Source: Podarcis vaucheri
Lineage: Eukaryota
Assembly: GCA_965113315.1 (NCBI GenBank)
Contig: OZ220370.1
Length of the DNA stretch: 64,000 bases
Direction: 5' to 3' (one strand)
This document shows, in pieces, positions 58,091 through 64,000 of this stretch. The notes beneath the pieces were generated by a model. It ran no database searches. It was not told the DNA's origin and was given only the letters and a program-made list of their open reading frames with translations. Within the stretch, counting starts at the first letter, position 1; each line of letters begins with the position of its first letter. The position numbers were made by a program, and so were the translations under genes.

Positions 58091-59855
58091 AGACATAACC
58101 ATAAAGAATACAGCAGAAGAGAAGAGGAACAAGATAAAATTCTATTGTTGACAGTAGGACATCTTAAGTAGATTATTCCAAATGTTACACATTTTGATTT
58201 ATAATACTATTATCATATCAGTTCTGATAAGGTTGAATGAACTTGTAATATTTTTTTTAAATGGCCATATGTTTAGTATGTTTACTAGTTTAGCCCTTAT
58301 CATTGGTCCTACAAGTGATAGATTATCCTTCGTGCAGCTCTTAATAGGCTTTTATAAATTGGATTCTGGATATGCACCTGAGATTTCAGAATGAAATATT
58401 TTGTGACACCTCGTTTTATTTATTACAGCTTTCCACATTCACGATGAAGATTCTTTTGATTCTTCAGTTGCGGAGTGAGAAGCAGAAGACAATGCTTCCC
58501 CTACTTAATCCACATGCTCCCAAAACTAGCAAAGGAAATTGGCATGCTTTCTCCAAACAGATAACATTCCAAGTAAAATTGCTGCCTTTTGTACCAAACA
58601 TTTCAACTGAAACATATGCAAATGATTATGGCAATTAACTTTGTAGGGAATTGCTGTATAAGAACGGCAAAAAATAAAAACAAGAACATTACAAAGGTGA
58701 TGTTCATGCTGCCATTTCTGCTAGAACCACACTAGAAACTGTGTGTACAACTATACACAATTTATTTCCCCCCCACACACAACCAAGTTCTTAGGGTACT
58801 TTCAGCATCCAAATTTCAAATTATTTGGAGGATTTTTTATTTTAAGGCAGAAAAGCTAGGAGAAAGGCAGCTGTGAGTATAAAGCATCTCTTTCAGAATA
58901 ATTTCTACAATTTCATGCTGGCCTGGTATGGTACACAAAGTGGGATAAACTATCAGGTCTTTCTGTTGATGAGGGTATGTGAAGCTGTAGCAGTCTCTAA
59001 ATGATTTGCTTTGCATCTAGTGCTTGCTATGAACAACTTGGCAACAACACTCTCTCAAATATGAGACTCACATGTTACATCAGTTTGTAAGACATCTTAA
59101 TAAGCCACTGAAATAGCCTCTAAGTGTATCACAGTCAGTGAGTTAACAAAATGTAAATTATAAACATGCATTGATGAAACATTACCAAAATACAAATTTA
59201 AAACAAAAAGGCTTAGGAGAGAAAGTACAGTCATATGTTTATGAAGTGGAGCTGCAGTGTATAACCAAAGAGTAACTGTTACACCAGTGCAAAACATGTT
59301 GAGAAATACAACCAAGGACACATCACTAGTGAAATGAAAATTCTGTATCTACTTCCAGGATTCTATATTACATTGGCTGAGGAATCTTTCTGACTTTTAA
59401 GGTTGTGAAAGACACCAAGGGTTCACATATTGAGCATTGGCAAGAGAGATATTGTAAACTTTGAAATTACAGAGATTCCACCTGGAAATGGTGACTAAAA
59501 AGGTATTGGTTTGATCTCTCTCTTGAACAAGATAAGGAAAAACGTTCTACGTCAAAATCACAAGACACTTGATCTTGAACCAGTAATTTGCTCTTGAGTA
59601 ATGAGCTCCAATGTTGTCCACAGAACTTCCCTAGACATTTTCATTGAGAGTTCCGTCCACATCTCTTTCTGTTTGCTGAGGTGCTGCACCACAGATGAAT
59701 GGAACAGCTCTAGGTGTGCGTTGGGACACACATGGACATCTTGATTGAGGTAATAATTCATTGCCTCATCTATTCACGTATCAACTTAATTGTACGTTAC
59801 CTTATGACCATCAGATGGCTTGCAATGCTTACAAAATACACAGTAGTTTATTTTC

Positions 59856-59980
59856 TAAGAACAAAATAAGAGTCTGCTGGATCAGGCCAATGACCCATGT
59901 GGTCCAGCATCCTGTTCTCACCAGACTGTTTAGATGCCTATGGGAAGCCATCAAGAGGGATCTGAGTGCAGCAGCACTCA
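59856..59980 (-). mobile_element. CR1 3'-end fragment inside the inferred AQP4 3'UTR
   Basis: taagaac...ataagagtctgctggatcaggccaatg...tccagcatcctgttctcac is the reverse complement of the CR1 3' ends elsewhere in the window. Confidence 0.7.
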
Positions 59981-61976
59981 TCAGGGCATTAGTATCTTTC
60001 TTCATATGGTCTCCCTTTGGCAGACCTGGCGAATTTTACTGCACAATATGATGTCTTTTTACTCAGAAGTTCCACTAAACCCAACAAGCCTTACTCCTTA
60101 GGAAGTAACTTGGTTTGCTTAGGATCACAGCCCTAGTTGAATTTCTTTGTTTTGGCTTTGCTATACTCTCAGTTCTTTCCTTTTTTGTGCAGTGCATTTG
60201 GTGCTGCTTCACACTGGGCAGTTTTGTTAGATGGGTGTTGCTTCTTCTATGGAGGAAGAAGTGTATATTTCTTTGATCACGTCGTGTTTCTTGTGCATAA
60301 GATTATCTATGTACTTCTCCCTACTTAGAAATATTCACCACTAGTATAGTGTCCTTTTTCTACAAGACCAGGTGTTCTCAGGGTGGTTTTGTACATTCAC
60401 CACATTTCACCACCAAAAACCTTAATAGGAATGGATGAGTTCCATACAAAGAACCTCAGCTATAGCAAATTTCAGTTCTGGCTACATTCAGAGAAAGTGT
60501 AAACGTTACTCCTTTTTGACCAAAAGCATTTGAAGTTTATAAAAGGCAAACTCACCATTCAGCAGCACAACATCACACAAAGTTGCAAGCTATTCCATGC
60601 TCTGGCTTCTTGATGCATTGAAAATCACAGTTGCTATTTAACTGTTTCATTGATATTATAACTGCATGGAGATCATGCAACAATTGCACACATCTCTGTG
60701 ACAATGGCTTTCTGGCCTATGTACACTGAGTGCAAGCACTGGAACAAACATGTCTGCGACTGTCACATGTGGAAATCTACGTGCAGTTTGCCTAGATGTA
60801 GAGCTTTTTATATAGGAAATGCATTGTGTTTGACGCAGCTCTAAAACAAATCTTTTTAGCAACAGAGTATTCAAAGCAAAGCATCAGTCACCAAAGCATT
60901 TCCCAGCAGTATTTTAAATAATTATGAAAAACCTGCTTGTTATGCTTTTTTTTAAAAAAATCACACTGTGAGCAAAATAGTTACACATTTTTAACATTTC
61001 AGTTATATAAAATTGGCACAGTAACATTTTATTTGTTTGAATAAGTGCACTGAAAACAGAACAGCCTTCAACTTCTTTTTGATACCTGCGTATTTTTATT
61101 TGACATGATCCACCCAAAGTTAACCACTGTTAAGTCCCACTGATGTCACTGGGAAAGTTAAGCTGTGTATAAATGCCTCCTGGTAAAAGGATCTGGAATT
61201 CACAGGGCTTAACTTTGGCTGGAATGCACACATTACAAGATGGCGTATAATACAGACTTATTTTGTTCATTGTATGTCTTCAACAGTTCTGGCAATAGTA
61301 TGTCATGAGAACGTTTTTGTGGAAGGACAACTCAATGTGGGGGACATTTTAAAGATTATGAGTCAAAAGGAGAGGACTTCCTTTTTTGTGGAAGTATAAA
61401 ATGTATGAGTATGTAGTAGATATAAAATGGCAAATGGCAATTCTTGTTTTTTTGTTTTGTTTTGTTTTGTTTAAATGTCTTCTCCCAAATGTAGCATGGA
61501 AGGATTAAAAATAACAGGAGGAATGAGGCTTTTGCAAGCATTTGTTGTATCCTGCATGTTGGCTCTGCTTTCACTGAACCTGCCATAGACTTTGTCATTA
61601 AAATTCTAATCAGGATTGACAACAGCCAATTAAGTGTCAGAAGAACAATCTGATAGACACTTCTTTCTGTGTCTATAGGCATTTTTTGATAAGTTTCATC
61701 TGTCAATCTGATTGACGAAGATTGCTATTTCCTGCTCATATCTGCTTGCGTTAAAACCAATGCCTCTTTCAAAATTCACTCAGAAAGCAGAGAGGGAATA
61801 AAAGGATTCCCTTATGGGTATTGCCAAAAGGACATTTATGAATTTGGAATAATCTATGAGGATCCCTCAACACAGTTAGCTGCTACCATGTCAACAGAAT
61901 GGGAGTCTGGTCTGATTAAACAGCTAATTCACTGCTGCCATTTTCCTACAATTTTATGATGTCGCAGGTGGCTAAT

Positions 61977-62066
61977 TTACAACAAATCTGTCTCTTTTAT
62001 GGGTGGGAGGCTATCTGTGGGCCTGCTAGTAGACTGTTCCCTGCTTTCAGTGCTCCTTGCTAGTCA
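61977..62066 (-). CDS. AQP4: AQP4 stop-codon readthrough extension (AQP4ex-type), 29 aa: X-LARSTESREQSTSRPTDSLPPIKETDLL
   Basis: TGA (62066-62064) is followed by CTAG. The frame stays open for 28 more codons to TAA (61979-61977). Length and the C-terminal LPPIKETDLL match the mammalian AQP4ex extension as I recall it. Confidence 0.88.
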
Positions 62067-62342
62067 TACAGATGATAGCACCTCATTGGTTGGGTCTCTA
62101 CCCTTCTTATCATCACCTCTCTCAAGGTCAATGACGTGGACCATTCCAGGCTTCAGAAGCAAATCATCTGTCTCCACCTGGCTCCTGGTGTCTTCAACTT
62201 CTATGTATTTCCCTTTGGACTGCTGGCTCGTTTTAGTAAACGCTTCTTTGAGCCGCTGTTTGAATTCAGCATCAGGACAGTAGACATATTCATAAAGGGC
62301 GCCTGCAAGAACTGCTCCTATAATTGGTCCCACCCAATATAT
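62064..62342 (-). CDS. AQP4: Aquaporin-4, terminal coding exon (TM6 end plus cytoplasmic C-tail, 92 aa + TGA); partial gene, upstream exons outside window
   Basis: Translation IYWVGPIIGAVLAGALYEYVYCPD...ETDDLLLKPG...EVLSSV* matches the AQP4 C-terminus, including the -SSV PDZ ligand. Preceded on the minus strand by a polypyrimidine tract and acceptor (ttctttatccctgttttgtgcag|ATA), phase 0. Confidence 0.98.
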   Translation of the reverse strand: MYWVGPIIGAVLAGALYEYVYCPDAEFKQRLKEAFTKTSQQSKGKYIEVEDTRSQVETDDLLLKPGMVHVIDLERGDDKKGRDPTNEVLSSV

Positions 62343-62822
62343 CTGCACAAAACAGGGATAAAGAAACATACATTAAGCAAGGATTGGGAGTACCGTTTCA
62401 AAGAAATGTCAAGAGTCCAATAAGGAAGTTGGGTGTTACCAAGGTTAGCATAGTTGGTGCTTCTCTTATTTGGTGCTACAGGAAATCTTAACAACCTTCC
62501 CAGTTTAGCAGGGCTTGGATGTGTAAATGGCACATCAGAGGCTTTGCTGGCACAGTATGTGAACACATGTGTTCAGCCAAGCCACATGAACAAATGTTTT
62601 ATAAATACCTGGAATGCTGCGTCTTTTATAGGCATAGGAGCACATACAGACACAGAATGATAAACTCACACCCAAGAACCTTAATTAGGCTGACTGAAGA
62701 ATAGCTAGTATTCTCTTGAATTCTGATTGGATGATGCTTTGTCATTTGTATCAGCAATGCCTTTGTTCATGAATCAATCAGCATAAAATAGCTTTGGATG
62801 AAACTAAATCAATACAACACAC

Positions 62823-63554: not shown

Positions 63555-64000
63555 ACACTTATGTTGCCAGCATATCCCAGCAGTTTCCTAATACTAAGAA
63601 AGGAAATCTGGTGAGCAATTGAAAGCAAGCCTAGAAACATACACTCATGAAGACACACCTAAGGTTCTATGATGGCATTCCAGCAGAACCTTCTGAAATC
63701 TATCTAATTAGATCAGTTAGTTACAGGAGACAACTGACATTTGTAGGAGCATCCTGTTTAAGTACAAGTTCTTATAGATTGCATTGATTCTGTTTCAATA
63801 CAGAATCAAACTTAATATAGGTAATGTCTCACTTTGACTCATCTTGGAACATGTGGGTTGTTTTTTTTTTTACAATCAAGTAGTATATATTTTTTTGAAA
63901 TAAATAAAATACATGATGGTAATAATACCGCTATTGATGGTGGAGGAAGCCATAGATGAGCCTTGTCCTCCACAAATTTGTCTAATCCTAAACCAGCAGG

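Follow-up and report, generated by a model that had tools for sequence, protein, structure and literature searches.

Does translation of the AQP4 gene in this lizard always end at the first stop codon, or might some of the ribosomes continue, as they do in mammals, into a conserved C-terminal tail? The window, by which we mean the whole stretch of 64,000 nucleotides of Podarcis vaucheri DNA that was analysed, raises this question on its minus strand, where an AQP4 readthrough cassette occupies exactly the segment 61977-62066 (a translation of the plus strand is meaningless here). The preliminary description had read this segment as TGA CTA G, followed by 28 sense codons and a TAA, and precisely this arrangement is present when the minus strand is read (Table 1). 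Judging from the sequence comparisons described below, we consider it very probable that the segment is the orthologous AQP4ex cassette, which would be read through to the TAA in a minority of mRNAs. The lizard AQP4 readthrough cassette as such is real and has already been described, and two other lizards have been published.

Table 1. Coordinates of the last AQP4 coding exon, its stop codon and the in-frame tail, given as positions of the window.
Feature	Position	Strand	Remark
AG splice acceptor before AQP4 exon 5	62344-62343	minus	
Last AQP4 coding exon (exon 5)	62342-62067	minus	92 codons, IYWVGP...EVLSSV, by translation
First (leaky, annotated-type) AQP4 stop, TGA	62066-62064	minus	Last sense codon before it is GTA
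CTAG tetranucleotide directly 3' of the AQP4 stop	62063-62060	minus	Readthrough-promoting context
In-frame extension of 28 sense codons	62063-61980	minus	LARSTESREQ...LPPIKETDLL
Tail codons 5-8 (TESR), bases 13-24 after the stop	62051-62040	minus	One silent base different from L001
Tail codons 8-11 (R-E-Q-S), RXXS motif at the human Ser335 position	62042-62031	minus	
Last ten tail codons, LPPIKETDLL	62009-61980	minus	Invariant in 24/24 sequences
Second stop, TAA, end of the extension	61979-61977	minus	TAA at the same position in L001

Its sequence identifies the exon in front of the stop as the terminal coding exon of an orthologue of AQP4. All 92 residues aligned with Aquaporin-4 PDB chains (positions 232-323 of a 323-residue chain, E 1e-44), and the next family, Aquaporin-2 (AQP2), followed at E 5e-4 over the first 27-30 residues only. 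The best matches in the protein collection were fragments that were 93% and 90% identical, and the cluster at 93% includes a Gekko kuhli record with the name Aquaporin-4, the nearest named relative. When submitted to Pfam, exon 5 alone gave an MIP match below threshold, as expected for a last helix plus tail, and the 28-residue tail gave no match. Exon 5 is the sole AQP4 exon of the window, as a tblastn search with P0013 found no further ones up to position 64000. As for the Gekko kuhli fragment itself (P0020, NCBI KAL8182219.1), it carries the source flag UNVERIFIED_CONTAM, has non-AQP4 residues at its start, and looks like a poor gene model.

By its length alone, the open frame behind the stop is unremarkable, since open runs of 28 codons start at 25% of the window positions, and the weight of the case rests on the comparison across species. 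A CTAG directly after the stop triplet was found for 4 of the 2481 TGA triplets on both strands of the window.

The AQP4 tail was predicted by PhyloCSF in Loughran et al. 2014 (PMC4132726), where the human cassette displayed ~7% readthrough in a HEK-293T reporter, which was abolished by deletion of CUAG. The importance of this tetranucleotide was seen there from deletions in several genes, AQP4 included, as well as from mutagenesis of OPRL1. According to the same study, GUA is without exception the last AQP4 sense codon, the stop is UGA, and the tail usually comprises 28 residues, with its conservation concentrated C-terminally; the supplementary alignment covers Anolis carolinensis, alligator, painted turtle, chicken, turkey, gar, coelacanth, and elephant shark. 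A second paper (PMC9138620) aligned AQP4 tails of fish, reptiles, birds, and amphibians as well as mammals, including the wall lizard Podarcis muralis (its Fig. 1A). The mechanism is known in mammals, as the preliminary description had said, in the form of CUAG-dependent AQP4 readthrough (PMC4132726), and the human tail peptide that it gives agrees with the human phosphopeptide DRTESRQDSLELSS (PMC9138620) over that part.

At the protein level, 22 AQP4 fragments from the database have a tail as long as that of the lizard; 4 of them are bird-like (P0016, P0022-P0024) and 18 mammal-like (one of these, P0064, primate-like). Together with the window and the bird-like contig L001 (see below), this gave a compared set of 24 sequences with 18 distinct tails. 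The tail measured 28 residues in every one of the 24 (P0042 seems longer only because its own second TGA is also read as W), and its last ten residues were the same throughout, so that an identical length and an invariant end, both claimed beforehand, were found in the entire set. Across the 18 distinct tails, the invariant positions were L1, E6, R8, and residues 19-28, with conservation strongest at the C-terminal end, while residues 9-18 vary freely. A search focused on residues 79-118 of P0016 yielded two more mammal-like tails and no squamate one.

We also observed that, in the protein collection, some gene calls have a W in place of the AQP4 TGA (P0004, P0008, P0014, P0016, P0022-P0024, P0027-P0044 in part, P0063, and P0064). 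Such W-for-TGA calls are an artefact of the caller, which is handy for surveys of tails and is no sign of translation.

A metagenome scan provided at least two host-derived AQP4 contigs, the bird-like L001 and a teleost-like L002, the first of which allowed for a comparison at the DNA level. At 1777-1866, L001 displays GTA TGA CTAG (TGA-CTAG at 1777-1783), 28 codons, and TAA. A codon-level dN/dS comparison, which had been proposed as a check on the preliminary description, revealed a substitution pattern of the coding type for this one DNA pair, i.e., the lizard window versus L001, under a simple mutation model. Over the whole tail, the pair differs at 20 bases, yet 21 of the 28 residues are identical (P 0.0014, 200,000 random-mutation trials), and the Nei-Gojobori omega amounted to 0.19 in the tail versus 0.04 in the coding sequence of exon 5. 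Within the last ten codons, a block that was fixed beforehand by its invariance in mammals, all 8 of the differences in 30 bases are silent (P 3e-6 under random mutation). The TESR residues, which had been noted as shared, likewise differ only silently from L001 at the DNA level, and the corresponding bases 13-24 after the stop are the most conserved stretch outside CUAG in the published alignment (PMC4132726). The coding-type pattern was hence observed at both ends of the tail, whereas the nine middle codons (10-18) had an omega of ~2 and are effectively unconstrained. We retained the whole-tail test and the test on the predefined block, and dropped as circular an "all silent" test on blocks that were chosen after viewing the residues.

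The two remaining reading frames of the tail are closed by stops in both the lizard and L001. The blastn alignment to L001 extends from the intron-exon border across the first stop and breaks off at 61986, near the second stop; further on, similarity returned at 61739-61557 and 61069-60989 only. Taken at the level of sequence, the comparisons support the view that the tail behaves as translated coding sequence under purifying selection. The selection that the preliminary description had postulated is thus borne out by the omega of 0.19 and the silent changes of the pair with L001, but its dating to the amniote ancestor is too recent, as the AQP4 UGA-CUAG is conserved throughout vertebrates, as far back as the ancestor shared with cartilaginous fishes (PMC4132726).

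An intact cassette could, in principle, still be a recent relic, with hardly any readthrough in this lizard lineage, or none that is put to use. We consider this very unlikely. The published lizard support for AQP4ex that we found is in silico only (PMC9138620 and the Loughran 2014 alignment), which would be in line with such a relic; however, the UGA, the CUAG, and the 12 bases downstream match those of the tested mammals exactly or almost exactly (PMC4132726). Furthermore, the differences from Anolis, as judged by eye, consist of 3 residues confined to codons 11-15 plus 4 silent bases, a distribution that is unexpected for decay.

The 3'UTR of AQP4 also contains conserved blocks that are clearly non-coding, and conservation alone would therefore be insufficient as proof of coding. 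One such block, at 61739-61557 on the minus strand (~240-420 bases after the second stop), is 75% identical to L001:2103-2285 and has a core of ~40 consecutive identical bases at about 61617-61656. Rfam contained no family for this block. A consensus fold of the two sequences was weak and had a single compensatory pair, and the block is thus probably bound by a protein or a microRNA. A second block, at 61069-60989 on the minus strand, is 74% identical to L001:2692-2766. Closer to the tail, the 84 bases past the second stop are 54% identical to L001 when gaps are allowed, versus 44 ± 3% for shuffles, such that the bases just past this stop are slightly closer to L001 than shuffles are. Some nucleotide-level constraint may continue just beyond the tail. 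By eye, the first ~16 bases after the second stop (61976-61960, minus strand; ATTAGCCACCTGC...) look similar to their mouse and turtle counterparts in the published alignment.

These conserved blocks, the slight likeness beyond the second stop, and the ease with which 28 open codons arise by chance are all compatible with the 84 bases of the tail being a conserved non-coding 3'UTR element, e.g., a protein or microRNA site or an RNA structure, in which the open frame would be incidental. We nevertheless deem such an element extremely improbable: the differences between the lizard and L001 sit at silent sites, and, although the middle varies, none of the 24 sequences departs from a length of 28 codons. 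An RNA structure, in particular, fits poorly with a tail fold that is less stable than its shuffles (z +1.35), with the lack of an Rfam match to the tail, and with the RNAz result of no conserved structure in AQP4 (PMC4132726). Recoding of the UGA as selenocysteine, or a tail reached by alternative splicing, has next to no probability. UGA does double as a selenocysteine codon, and the GTATGA at the stop is faintly like a splice donor. However, Rfam scans of 59000-62400 (E up to 1) and of the whole window (gathering scores) detected neither a SECIS nor any other family; the tail follows the stop without a gap and in the frame of the coding sequence, which leaves no space for an intron between the two; and mammalian AQP4 shows plain CUAG-dependent readthrough (PMC4132726). 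Given the weak fold and the absence of Rfam and SECIS matches, conserved RNA structure and selenocysteine recoding are both unsupported.

For the orthologous AQP4ex cassette, our preferred reading of the segment, we infer by analogy with mammals the occurrence of readthrough in this lizard, its level, and an equivalent part of the tail in anchoring. The UGA would be decoded by a near-cognate tRNA instead of leading to termination in a few per cent of the ribosomes, aided by the CUAG, after which the ribosome would translate 28 further codons up to the TAA. The predicted product is an AQP4 subunit with a 29-residue C-terminal tail and an end of the IKETDLL type. This extended subunit would enter AQP4 tetramers, where the conserved C-terminal end of the tail may mediate anchoring at perivascular endfeet. 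In the mouse, the AQP4 tail is required for anchoring at perivascular astrocyte endfeet, and both the endfoot anchoring and the interaction of the tail with alpha-syntrophin are known for mouse and human only (PMC9138620).

If the tail anchors likewise in reptiles, the polarised perivascular placement of AQP4 would be ancestral to vertebrates and not peculiar to mammals. The tail might, in addition, be regulated in a lineage-specific manner through the RXXS motif that occupies the Ser335 position. This motif is kept in the wall lizard and in mouse (PMC9138620), and the serine that completes it in the lizard tail (R-E-Q-S) is missing from the bird-like L001 and P0016; its retention in the lizard and its absence from the bird-like tails and from the Anolis row would, if true, point to such regulation. 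We put forward this combined reading as a tentative one that is somewhat less likely to hold than to fail. The scientific value of the locus is otherwise small, as it adds one more orthologue to a well-described recoding event whose deep conservation, lizards included, has already been published. Its practical value lies in annotation, since the readthrough isoform belongs in the AQP4 model of this genome. Experiments on AQP4ex are apparently confined to mammals, and lizard or bird brain would offer a simple way to ask whether anchoring is ancestral.

Of the known systems that come near the lizard cassette, one is mammalian AQP4ex, with which it shares the gene, the GUA as last sense codon, the UGA-CUAG, and the 28 codons. 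The mammal-like database tails agree with the lizard in L1, E6, and R8 as well as over their last ten residues, and the lizard keeps the RXXS at the position of Ser335. In contrast, residues 2-4 and 9-18 are different (at the start, ARS... in the lizard and ED... in mammals), and the RXXS at the mammalian Ser331 position is missing in the lizard, where the Arg is located one residue further away.

The two published lizards form a further comparison. When the machine-read text of the published alignment is inspected by eye, the tail of Anolis carolinensis again spans 28 codons after a TGA-CTAG, and 25 of its 28 residues are as in the lizard window. By eye, the two differ at 7 bases in 6 codons, which account for the residue changes and silent bases mentioned above. 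The second stop is TGA in Anolis versus TAA in the window, and Anolis has a Pro where the window has the Ser335-equivalent serine. Podarcis muralis, on the other hand, keeps the Ser335 RXXS motif, as does the window (PMC9138620).

The teleost-like AQP4 of L002 (MDSQ01003687.1, 466-504) has kept GTA-TGA-CTA, but with a T instead of a G as the fourth base. Its tail is 11 codons long, with a METNL end followed by TAG, and the long tail is hence not universal, as judged from this one fish-like copy; its E-T-x-L end is reminiscent of the ETDLL of the lizard. Outside AQP4, the genes OPRK1, OPRL1, MAPK10, and MDH1 have the same UGA-CUAG as lizard AQP4 and do not need a downstream RNA structure, whereas the host genes are different and the tails unrelated. 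Across the vertebrate UGA-CUAG genes, reported readthrough efficiencies lie between about 3.5% and 31%, and human AQP4 is at ~7% (PMC4132726).
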